Assembly: GCA_964035545.1 (NCBI GenBank)
Contig: OZ037767.1
Coordinates: forward strand, 24,568,628-24,632,627
From: Bugula neritina
Lineage: Eukaryota > Animalia > Bryozoa
Reading direction: 5' to 3'
DNA length: 64,000 nt
A program made the position numbers and the translations under genes. Under the pieces are notes generated by a model. That model was not told where the DNA came from and searched no databases. It saw nothing but the letters and a program-made list of their open reading frames with translations. This document shows, piece by piece, positions 15,929 to 33,431 of the stretch. Numbering within the stretch: the first letter of the stretch is position 1; every line of letters begins with the position of its first letter.

Positions 15929-17972
15929 ACAATTAAAACTGTTCAGCAAGATAATAAGTGGCAAGTCTCCTTTCAAAAGAGCCCTAGCAGTAGTCACCCC
16001 AGCAGCTTCATCTGGTATCTCACTTTCATATGCATGTAATACTATTGTAAGATAACCTCTATGTGTAAGAAAGTAATATCTATTACACCGCGTATTTGTA
16101 TAATCGTGTAAAAATTTAACAAGTTAAAAGACAGCATGCTATATTGTAACAATGTATGTAAGAAGTTTGTGAAATATTTTCTACAGCCTACATAATCATT
16201 AGTCCAAGGCACTGAATTGGAATACATCATTTCAGTAGTCCAAAGCAACTGCGTAAACTGATAGCAATAGTAGTTATTGGTGTTGTAAATAATTTCACCT
16301 CCACACAAGAGGAGTCAGCATAAAGTCATAAGTTCGATCTCCAGTGAAGGCAATTGGTGATGTTAGGAAAAGCATCCAGTCATAATTGCTCCTGTGCCAT
16401 ATATGAATATAGGTCATTAGCCCGCCTAAAAAGCCCTTTCTATTAGGGGTTCTTACAAGAATAGTGACTATAAACTTGTTTGAGTTTCTTTTATATCTAC
16501 AAGCTTCACAATAAAGTTACTACTTATATTCTATGTACATGATATTCCGATGTAATGTTGTCAGTGAATTTGTCTACACCTGCTGATGATTTCTTTTCTG
16601 CCAATGCCTATTGCCCATGGCCTGAAAGCATAGTATCTCGTAGCGCTGCCAGGAAATCTTTTGGCTTTCAAGCTGCTCCGTCAAAATGGACTGCCCCCGT
16701 TTCACTGACTGCAAAGTTTGCAAACTACTCGGCCAGAATGAGTGTTGATGACCAAGACGATGCTATGGAGAATGTGACTTCAGTGAGTGCGACACACCAA
16801 CTATCTCATGGGCACAGTTTATGCACCAATGTTCAGTTACATAGTCTCACTTTATCAACAAAAGTCAATTTTTCTTTTGGTTTCAAACTGATTTCACAGA
16901 TTATAGATGGTACCAGACACTGACTAAGGATAGTCATTAAACAAATTTAAGAAATAGTATATTAGTTTGTATTTTTGTATATTTGAATTTATAGCAATGG
17001 AACTCCATCTGTAGTAATGTTCAGGTGACATTCATAAGGAGAGAGAATGAGAATTACTCTAGCAGCGCCGACATACTCATTTCCTTTGATGACTATTATG
17101 TTACTGGATATCCTAACAGAAGGGGCGGTGTATACGCATATACTTACTACCCGACTTACAGCGCCATCAAACTAGACAACACAGAACTCTGGGCTAGTAA
17201 GAAATCCATATTTGATAACACATACTTTTAGCATTTACATCACTGTACCAATCTGAAGTGGCAGTCAAATATCTGTGTTATTGCACTACTCATATTTCCT
17301 TTGCTTTTCTGGTGCCACTTGTACATTATTGCTATTTTACATACGTGTTAAGATGTTTTGTGTGAATTTCATGTAGTCAAAATGCTGAATGAATATAATG
17401 TAAAAAATTTCTTGTGATCTGATTTGTTGATCACTGTTTAGCGAGTTTACTTCTCAAAATTTCGTTTTAATTTTCTACTTCAATCAATTGTCCATTTTTG
17501 AAAGTAGCTAGTGAATTTTTTTGAGGAAAAATTTTGCAACATGGCAGTAGTCTTTGGTAAATGCAATTGTAACCGGAGTTTTGCTCTCGCTGGCCATGTA
17601 TTATGGGAATGGCAGGTAACTCCTGAAGCAGACTTTTATTGCATGCGATATCCCGCTTTATGTTGCCTTGGCTTTACTTGCTGGTCTCGCACGCACGCAC
17701 GCACACGCACGCACGCACACGCACGCACGCACACCACCCATACTATTTTGTATGAGTCTTGTTGGAAATTTGTAGCCCTACATTAGACTATGTGTGTAAT
17801 TGCAGGGAAACCATTACAGATTGTTCTACTTCATGAGATGGGACATGCCCTTGGCTTAGGTCACTCAGATCTCCAGTCTGCTGTCATGTACAAGTACTAC
17901 TCTTTCAACAAATTCATGCTGAGCTCAGATGATATTGATGGTCTAAAGCATGTATATTGTAATAGCAACTAG
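15929..17972 (+). CDS. Minimal matrix metalloproteinase (M10A), paralog A; first coding exon not found
   Basis: Exons 15929-16014, 16565-16782, 16995-17196, 17806-17972 with the same intron phases (2,1,0,1) as the paralogs. HEMGHALGLGH, Met-turn AVMY, LSSDDIDGLKHVYC then stop. Confidence 0.85.
16305..16410 (+). mobile_element. Degraded SINE-like repeat (family also at ~23.8 kb and ~24.4 kb)
   Basis: B-box-like gttcgatctcc followed by shared tail catccagtcataattgctcctgtgcca. Confidence 0.45.
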
Positions 17973-19150
17973 CTAGTTCACATCTCTGTTGGAATGAAAT
18001 TCACTCTGTAGTTGTTATAATTCACTGTTACAATTAGCCATACTACATTATATATCTACAGTAGAAACATATTTTATACTTTTACAATCATATATTTATC
18101 ATTAAATTATCTAATCATTACAATCATTATATGTTTAAACTTTTCGAAGTAGGTTGAATCATTTTTAAACTTATTTTGCATGAGGATTAATATAAAATCT
18201 AACAAATAATTCAAATATCGCAATCTCATGCTATTACTAGGCCTGCTAGAGTTTTCTTGATAATTTCCATTAAAAAATATGCACTGCTGCAATCTTTCCA
18301 ACTTGAGGTTTTAAAGCTACCTGTGGAAGCAGTTATGCATAAAATATTAATAGGCTACTGTACTACACAATTGTCTGCCATTTACCTATATATAACTTTT
18401 GCAATACTTAATAAAGATATTGTAAACAATAAAAACTGTAACAGAATAAAAAAGTTTATGATAGCCAACCATACTTACTAAATCCATGCAACCAAATATT
18501 CTACAGACTAATATATAAGTAGCATATTTTTACTGCACGTTACTACATTAAAACCCAGAGTATTTAGGAATTAAGTTTTCATGCCTGCATATCTGCTCAT
18601 AGATGTGTTTCAGCTCGATCTATGTAAAAAGATGGTTAATTGAAGAAATTTTCATTGATTTTATTATCATTACAACTTTTCTGAAGATTTAAAATTACAA
18701 CTAAAGTGAGTGACTGCAAAAGAAAGCGATGGCATGTACACACTAGTGTAAATATTATACTTTGAACTTTAAACTTTTATAAAATCAGCAAGCTATTTAT
18801 TTACTACTAAAGCAAAATCTTGAGGCATAAATATCCGTTCATCTAATATGTTGAAATCTAACTCCCAGAAACTTTTCTACAGACACGAAAATATGAATAA
18901 TTAGCATTAGCTTCATTAATTTTATTAACATCTTTCATAAAATAACAATAACATAACATATCCCATACTATATTAAATAAATCTAGGGAAGCTTCAAAAG
19001 TTAAATGTGTAATAAATATTATTCTATAAACTATGATTAATTTTTTACAGAAGTCAAGCATCAACATCACAGTTTCTGTAACTATGACAAAATATTATGG
19101 CAATTGAAAAACAAAATCATTCAAACTACAGTATAATAGAAGAAATTTGA

Positions 19151-32300: not shown

Positions 32301-33431
32301 ATGTAGCAGCTGGTGAAGTTGGTTTACCATATCACCTGTTACAGGAAGCTGAGCATATCTCTGCATTTTTCTCAATGCTCTCTTCATTTCTTGTGAAGGT
32401 GGCTTAACTTCACCACTATTCAATGACTCACTCAGATAGCCAAACTGTTCCAACCATCTAAAACATGGATAATACATTCAGTAGAACAATAGATGGTGAC
32501 AGCTCAAAGCATTCAAATTTTTTCACTCAATAATGCAATAGATTTCAAATTTAACTAGTAGTTTACATTTTTCAACTTTTGCAAACCAATTTGAAACTTA
32601 ACATGTTTGGAAATAATCATTGTTTAAAGTCAATTGATCAAAGCTTTACTCCAGGTCTAAAAAATTGTTTCATACTTATGAATCTGTTTGGTATGAAGTG
32701 CATTACTTAATTAAAGTCTTGTGAATTTGAACATTTGCGTTTATGGAACCCATTACCTGTGTCCAGTATACATTTATAAATAATTCATAATATTTCTTAA
32801 TAAAAGGTTTTTCAAACAGCGAAGTCGTATGCCGAACTTAGAGCCGACATCTGTAGATGTTCTTTTGAACACAAAATATTTGTTAAGTTTCTAAGTTTTC
32901 TGATAAATAAATATATGGTACAAAGTGTTGGAATTACAAAAACTGAACTATTATTTGAATTAAGTTCAATAATAAATTAGCAAATTTTTTTTGAAAGCAA
33001 GCAAATAGAAACATATACCTGACGGCTTTCTCTATTTCTTTGTTTGTTCTCGTAATGTTTTTACTCATTTTGTTATTCAAAACACTGTTTAGTTTTGAAG
33101 TCGGTTTCATAGAATTCTTTTTAATTATCTGCATGTGTGCTAGAGTTGATGGTTTCACTGAAGGCAGTATCGTAGGTCGATGGGTTGAATTGGGTTTGGG
33201 TGAGAGCTGTTCCACAGGTAATATTGATGTATTTACAGACAGTGTGGTTGGCACAACCGAGACAACTGGAGGTGTGTGTGATTGTGACATAGATGGGCTT
33301 GGTAACGTCTCTACCGTAGGTTTAGTCACAGAGTTAGAACTAGTAATCGGTGCTCCAACACACTGGTGTGTAGTTGTGTTTAGAACCAAAGCTAGACATA
33401 ATATTGTAGTGTGTTTTAATGAAGCTTTCAT
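29364..33431 (-). CDS. Minimal matrix metalloproteinase (M10A), paralog D, complete, with mucin-like N-terminal insert
   Basis: Exons 33431-33019 (signal peptide + S/T/P-rich tract), 32457-32336 (WLEQFGYL..ALRKMQRYAQLPVTG), 31206-30998 (PRCGDKD, RVKR), 30151-29932 (GVLAYAALPRNGDMFFDDTESW), 29530-29364 (HELGHSLGFAH, AVMY, LTDDDIAGAIDMFGVAK*). The last two exons are not in the ORF track. Confidence 0.92.
30216..30300 (-). mobile_element. tRNA-derived repeat / tRNA pseudogene (TGC, Ala-like loop), copy 1
   Basis: A box tggtgcattgg, loop cttgcaa, B box ggttcgaatct, T-tract; anticodon and acceptor stems pair poorly. Confidence 0.7.
30924..30983. repeat. (TA)n microsatellite in MMP-D intron
   Basis: Pure TA run. 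Confidence 0.97.

Follow-up and report, generated by a model that had tools for sequence, protein, structure and literature searches.

A cluster of four hemopexin-less matrixin genes in Bugula neritina that have lost the structural-zinc ligands

The locus and its four genes

The window analysed here is a stretch of 64,000 nucleotides from the bryozoan Bugula neritina (assembly GCA_964035545.1, contig OZ037767.1, positions 24,568,628 to 24,632,627 of the forward strand), AT-rich animal DNA from a genome of 216 Mb. Positions 15629-33431 of this window hold four genes with introns, here named A (+), B (-), C (+) and D (-), that encode matrixins, i.e., members of the matrix metalloproteinase (MMP) family. 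Reviews and recent papers (for example PMC12587646) ascribe to every MMP, in addition to the zinc of the active site, a structural zinc and calcium. In the four proteins encoded at this locus, the His and Asp ligands of the structural zinc have been lost, except for one His in B, with the catalytic zinc site intact, and it is this loss that is described and discussed in the following sections.

The gene order A-B-C-D corresponds to two pairs, each of them convergent. Splice junctions were taken from the codon tables around each open segment, and the joined frames are open over 254 amino acids in A, 264 in B, 209 in C and 376 in D, where the lengths of B and C include first exons that were inferred. 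In all four genes, a phase 0 intron precedes the exon that starts with (Q/E)WN and a phase 1 intron follows the Trp of the fifth strand (strand V), in agreement with an earlier note on this DNA that had described four paralogues with common exon phases. The introns are of the GT-AG type throughout except at two sites, a GC donor in intron 3 of B (19568-19569) and an AAG acceptor in intron 3 of D (30152-30154). As both are identical in the B. neritina assembly GCA_010799875.2, they are considered conserved non-standard sites, not damage. The exons are listed below; L063 is a contig of that second assembly and P0042 is a B. neritina protein annotated on it.

Gene A, exon 1, 15629..15720, + strand: start codon and signal peptide with a phase 2 donor, from the codon table; 90% identical to L063 10001-10092, the start of P0042.
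Gene A, exon 1b, 15929..16014, + strand: propeptide, located by tblastn of P0042, the codon table and the AG/GT flanks.
Gene A, exon 2, 16565..16782, + strand: degenerate cysteine switch (Cys kept) without an RX(K/R)R site, then the first catalytic-domain strand and helix A; its splice sites are also conserved in L063.
Gene A, exon 3, 16995..17196, + strand: strands II-V with the S-loop; ligand columns Y, T, Y, K.
Gene A, exon 4, 17806..17972, + strand: helix B with HExxHxxGxxH, Met-turn, helix C and stop; PF00413 at 5e-15.
Gene B, exon 1, 21656..21789, - strand: start codon and signal peptide, from the codon table; 90% identical to L063 where the annotated gene of 264 amino acids begins.
Gene B, exon 1b (predicted), 20748..20857, - strand: propeptide; the sole open AG..GT segment of the 110 nucleotides needed for the 264 amino acids of the orthologue.
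Gene B, exon 2, 20460..20656, - strand: cysteine switch (Cys-Gly-Ile-Pro), furin-type RKKR site and start of the catalytic domain; acceptor deduced.
Gene B, exon 3, 19570..19762, - strand: S-loop exon; ligand columns H, P, F, S; GC donor.
Gene B, exon 4, 19151..19311, - strand: zinc motif, Met-turn, helix C and stop; PF00413 at 7e-14.
Gene C, exon 1 (predicted), 25221..25327, + strand: start codon and hydrophobic signal peptide with a phase 2 GT donor, inside a 91% conserved ungapped block amid ~80% gapped non-coding DNA; open in both species.
Gene C, exon 2, 26850..27018, + strand: switch Cys, RRKR site and start of the catalytic domain; acceptor deduced from phase.
Gene C, exon 3, 27263..27455, + strand: S-loop exon; ligand columns R, K, F, G.
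Gene C, exon 4, 28109..28269, + strand: zinc motif, Met-turn, helix C and stop; PF00413 at 2e-14.
Gene D, exon 1, 33019..33431, - strand: signal peptide and a Ser/Thr/Pro-rich leader of ~115 residues, for which a Pfam search gave no credible family.
Gene D, exon 2, 32336..32457, - strand: PG_binding_1-type prodomain; PF01471 at 1.6e-5, 25.4 bits (cut-off 23).
Gene D, exon 3, 30998..31206, - strand: canonical PRCG cysteine switch, RVKR site and start of the catalytic domain.
Gene D, exon 4, 29932..30151, - strand: S-loop exon; ligand columns Y, gap, Y, F; AAG acceptor.
Gene D, exon 5, 29364..29530, - strand: zinc motif, Met-turn, helix C and stop; PF00413 at 7e-14.

Family and domain architecture

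The last exons alone score 52-56 bits against the Peptidase_M10 profile (PF00413, MEROPS M10A; cut-off 24), and full-length P0042, the B. neritina orthologue of A, reaches 80 bits over profile positions 1-158 of 159. The S-loop exons of A-D, by themselves, are weak or silent against the same Pfam profile, a sign of strong divergence of that region. All four genes present HExxHxxGxxH, followed by Ser, and the Met-turn; the motif and the turn had also been noted at the outset. The stop codon lies inside the last exon, 1-4 residues past helix C, a position conserved in the orthologues, and no match to hemopexin (PF00045) was found within the window; the early stop and the missing hemopexin domain were thus also correctly described at the outset.

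A cysteine occupies the switch position in the propeptide of every gene, in the PRCG motif in D, in a Cys-Gly-x-Pro core with Arg and Pro swapped in B, and in a divergent context where only the Cys is kept in A and C. The RX(K/R)R furin-type site directly precedes the mature N-terminus in B, C and D, but not in A. The propeptides of A-C are short and have no recognisable domain. Consequently, the term “minimal”, which had been applied to all four MMPs, is adequate for A, B and C but not for D, with its Ser/Thr/Pro-rich leader and PG_binding_1 prodomain. Taken together, A-D are predicted to be secreted matrixin zymogens, composed of a signal peptide, a propeptide and a catalytic domain of ~150-165 residues that ends after helix C, with no linker or hemopexin domain. 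To judge from their sequences, they are matrixins by homology but not canonical two-zinc MMP domains.

Structural-zinc and catalytic residues

The ligand positions were read as match columns of a local hidden Markov model (HMM) built from 173 matrixin domains and numbered as in MMP-12, with 128 comparison proteins. The ligand columns given above for each S-loop exon are H169, D171, H184 and H196, in this order, and they read H, D, H, H in 70 domains of the comparison proteins. Tyr or Phe has replaced the His of the LAHA motif, and Lys, Ser, Gly or Phe the His of xHFD, in all four genes, just as first proposed, and the phmmer alignment of P0042 to MMP-9 shows the same ligand replacements. The proposed loss of the HxD ligands holds for A, C and D, but in B the first ligand column still has its His.

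Regarding calcium, D198 and E201, the Asp and Glu before the Trp of DxxExW, are kept in all four genes, while D176, the Asp of the PFDG loop, is replaced or deleted in each, as had been noticed before; the other calcium ligands are main-chain carbonyls. The catalytic columns H218, E219, H222 and H228 and the Met-turn M236 are kept in A-D and in their orthologues. Compared with a canonical S-loop, that of A-C lacks two residues, while that of D is of the usual length.

On these grounds, A-D are most likely secreted, hemopexin-less, single-zinc matrixins. We consider it likely that they represent four functional paralogues that keep the catalytic zinc site, have lost the structural-zinc ligands and originated as local duplicates within a bryozoan radiation. 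The mature enzymes would act as soluble endopeptidases with one zinc per molecule, and side-chain packing, together with the Asp and Glu calcium ligands that have been retained, would keep the S-loop on the sheet. Their role would probably be the remodelling of the extracellular matrix or the cuticle.

Phylogeny and the distribution of ligand loss

A maximum likelihood tree (LG+G4), weak at depth, was obtained from 59 domains over ~160 columns. In this tree, A-C group together with 100% bootstrap and A-D with 99%, D being basal. The cluster arose by local duplication, with D branching off first, A next and B and C last. Its closest neighbours in the tree are zinc-less paralogues from C3:5.4 Mb and 1.87 Mb in the same genome (joining node only 56%), and a second zinc-less bryozoan group is located elsewhere in the tree. 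Orthology to the vertebrate matrilysins was considered and rejected, as A-D form their own clade beside bryozoan paralogues and MMP-26 groups with deuterostome MMPs. The matrilysins MMP-7 and MMP-26, the classical minimal-domain MMPs, resemble A-D in having a signal peptide, a propeptide with a cysteine at the switch position and a catalytic domain with the same fold, zinc motif and Met-turn, and in having no hinge or hemopexin domain. By contrast, they keep the four structural-zinc ligands (H, D, H, H in MMP-26) and the PFDG calcium loop, and, unlike them, A-C have no PG_binding_1-type prodomain.

The same genome holds ~17 Peptidase_M10 loci, and the S-loop profile matches only the four cluster genes. 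In at least seven further loci, neither of the two strand positions carries a His (C9:3.65 Mb, C3:5.42 Mb with three, C3:1.87 Mb, C3:26.48 Mb and C8:9.6 Mb). The members of the C3:5.42 Mb group are placed as follows.

C3:5.416, 5.422, 5.427 Mb: three zinc-less paralogues.

The His ligands are kept at only about five matrixin loci of the genome; canonical ligands are found at C4:19.5 Mb, C2:0.12 Mb and C4:6.27 Mb, and the two MMP-21-like genes have a Cys-containing ligand variant. Genome-wide, there are two hemopexin matches, neither of them in the window. At the position of the LAHA His, A-D have an aromatic residue, but the other zinc-less paralogues have Gln, Ala, Glu, Lys or Arg, so stabilisation by aromatic residues, suggested in the earlier note, does not stand as a general rule. 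In several of the zinc-less paralogues, the residue directly preceding the first catalytic His is a Cys.

Outside this genome, the ligands are also missing from the Lingula anatina protein XP_013402591.1, which has hemopexin, from multi-domain proteins of Turnera subulata and from bacterial matrixins. The latter (from Paenibacillus pinisoli, Streptomyces lydicus and the metagenomic sequence P0024) are like A-D in belonging to Peptidase_M10 with an intact catalytic motif and non-ligand residues at the structural-zinc columns, but they occur in a bacterial domain context and show no signal of shared ancestry with the cluster in the tree. The sampled MMPs of molluscs, echinoderms, cnidarians, nematodes and arthropods have canonical ligands. 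In the vertebrate MMP-19 clade (P0045-P0067), the first half of the site is conserved in another form, with Cys at the column of the HxD Asp and the His shifted to just after strand III. Hence, the idea of a lineage-specific subfamily is upheld for the cluster as a clade but not for the ligand loss itself, which is not confined to it. Ligand loss is the common state of the MMPs of this bryozoan and recurs elsewhere. The cluster is a single branch within a larger radiation of bryozoan matrixins without hemopexin, in most of which the structural-zinc ligands are missing as well.

This distribution raises the question of whether the ligands were lost once, long ago, in the ancestry of a wide lophophorate or lophotrochozoan clade of MMPs, in place of a bugulid novelty or repeated independent losses. 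The Lingula protein, deposited as ‘matrix metalloproteinase-16’, is an argument for such a scenario, as it has Tyr for the LAHA His, Arg for the xHFD His, a deletion of the HxD stretch and a basic Gly-Gly S-loop similar to that of the cluster; in addition, the nearest tree neighbours of the cluster are themselves zinc-less bryozoan paralogues. However, XP_013402591.1 has a PG_binding_1 prodomain, unlike A-C, and four hemopexin repeats, unlike A-D, it falls outside the cluster and groups with canonical MMPs (70%), and its nearest database relatives are canonical MMP-19 proteins with ~50% identity. The low support of the node that joins the cluster to its neighbours, the second zinc-less bryozoan group and the weakness of the tree at depth also speak against one ancient event, which we regard as rather unlikely.

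What may hold the S-loop in place

If the structural zinc has been lost, other contacts would be expected to fix the S-loop. In each of A-C, helix A ends with a Trp that is followed, four residues on, by a Cys, and a second Cys replaces the Gly usually found at the end of helix C. In gene A, the corresponding codons are 17007-17009 and 17959-17961, and the equivalents of B and C are situated in their S-loop and last exons. Both cysteines are kept in the B. neritina orthologues of A-C, and D has neither. This arrangement suggests a putative disulfide that would join the first Cys to the second, C-terminal one, and that may also hold the S-loop in A-C.

Alternatively, a second metal site could have been rebuilt from other ligands, most plausibly in D-type proteins. 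When D and its B. neritina orthologue are aligned with two D-type fragments from more distant sources, a trio of residues proves to be conserved in all four sequences: one His directly follows strand III, an Asp occupies the H169 column and a second His lies four positions beyond the strand V Trp. In addition, B keeps the His of the first ligand column in both species. Nevertheless, in the window species the S-loop has no His or Cys in A or C and one His in B; the B. neritina orthologues of A and C each have a single His that is absent from the window species, and one His in B cannot form a site. As A and C have no conserved S-loop His or Cys and B has a single His, a site of the canonical type is not rebuildable in A-C, and we find a rebuilt site improbable as an explanation for the cluster, the single-zinc reading described above being preferred.

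Orthologues, selection and fold

The S-loop exon profile of the four genes gave 41 matches among 1.84 billion representative proteins, the top four being open reading frame fragments; the close matches of the S-loop exons in this library are solely such fragments of orthologues. The orthologue of A is KAF6025265.1, ‘MMP8 [Bugula neritina]’ (P0042, 253 amino acids), whose 90% cluster is represented by P0002, of 68 amino acids. The contig with the P0042 gene (L063) also holds the adjoining B orthologue, the gene model of 264 amino acids, and JGI contig L064 holds the C orthologue and most of the D orthologue. P0042 and the 264-residue model have ~90% nucleotide identity to A and B in exons, the same exon structure and the same ligand loss; they are automatic predictions, that of A under a vertebrate name, and come from a closely related species (dS, the synonymous divergence, ~0.22). 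Two further, more distant sources have D-type exons with the same substitutions, one of them also with a stop right after helix C. The orthologue of C (L063 20309-21735, window 25221-28269) may be unannotated at the B. neritina locus, which, as fetched, stops short of D.

Orthologous exons are 90-97% identical and ungapped, whereas the non-coding DNA around them shows 77-81% identity and numerous gaps. Together with a dS of ~0.22, this indicates that the window comes from a close relative, a sister species, of the sequenced B. neritina (GCA_010799875.2). The orthologous frames contain no stops and all splice sites are conserved. Ratios of nonsynonymous to synonymous divergence (dN/dS) relative to these orthologues are 0.27 for A, 0.29 for B (exons 3-4), 0.20 for C and 0.05 for D, with dS of 0.21-0.24, instead of the ~1 that the earlier note had named, for untranscribed genes, as a refutation. 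A-D are therefore live genes under purifying selection, and the pseudogene reading is rejected by these ratios, 0.05-0.29, and by the intact frames.

Regarding the fold, a single-sequence AlphaFold2 model of P0042 gave a predicted local distance difference test (pLDDT) score of 40, and a model based on a 79-row alignment was used instead, with pLDDT 80-97 in the catalytic domain and ~80-84 in the S-loop. Its best Foldseek matches in the PDB are MMP-13, -1, -2, -3, -12 and -9, with template modelling (TM) scores of ~0.8 and a root mean square deviation of 2.6-3.0 Å, and the Atlas structure search agrees with these MMP catalytic-domain matches. The solved bacterial MMP karilysin, from Tannerella, is another structural match (TM 0.79); karilysin keeps a structural zinc. 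The orthologue of A is thus confidently predicted to fold as an MMP catalytic domain, a five-stranded sheet with three helices.

It might still be argued that A-D are duplicates in decay, or protease homologues without catalytic function in which an unstable S-loop has ceased to support substrate binding, as A, B and C change at the protein level at four to five times the rate of D, no RNA run was found and the switch and cleavage site of A are degenerate, but this is very improbable given the dN/dS of 0.2-0.3, well under 1, the frames and splice sites intact in two species at dS ~0.22, the five catalytic and Met-turn residues kept in every copy and the confidently predicted fold.

In favouring four functional, single-zinc paralogues, several observations that point the other way have to be taken into account. 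A has no furin-type site and its switch is only a remnant, which bears on its latency and activation. Only the orthologue of A was modelled, and the alignment behind the model consists mostly of canonical MMPs, which may overstate the confidence in the S-loop. Additionally, C is absent from the called genes at the B. neritina locus, and the search for sequencing runs that hold the stretch found no RNA run and one DNA data set only.

Apart from the genes, a long (CA)n microsatellite lies between B and C (window 22940-23090) and a (TA)n run at the start of D intron 3 (window 30930-30990). ARAGORN found no tRNA genes in window 15000-34500.

Implications for the MMP family

A literature search on natural MMPs without structural zinc and on bryozoan MMPs yielded no description of this loss. 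The suggestion that the subfamily was possibly undescribed is accordingly sound as to the loss, for which no paper was found, but has to be qualified for the proteins, as the orthologues of A and B had already been deposited as predicted proteins. In a B. neritina transcriptome, ‘BnMMP7’ was up-regulated after settlement, although it is not linkable to genes A-D (PMC4192642).

What the cluster shows is a loss in an enzyme family that is well known, and no new type of system; comparable losses occur here and there in bacteria, in a plant and in a brachiopod. Beyond the cluster, it is possible, and we propose it tentatively, that bryozoans carry a sizeable radiation of MMPs that both fold and cleave with one zinc ion and in which the S-loop is fixed by other means, such as a newly formed disulfide in A-C and possibly, in D-type proteins, a new His/Asp/His site. 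If true, they would provide the first demonstration of natural metazoan matrixins that manage without the structural zinc that textbooks ascribe to every MMP. Pattern-based MMP searches that require the structural-zinc ligands will miss part of the family. The S-loop, pinned by the structural zinc and calcium, borders the substrate cleft as its upper rim. The absence of the ligands from a conserved animal clade, and apparently from most of the MMP repertoire of one phylum, offers natural test cases for whether the second zinc serves fold stability, cleft geometry or resistance to autolysis.

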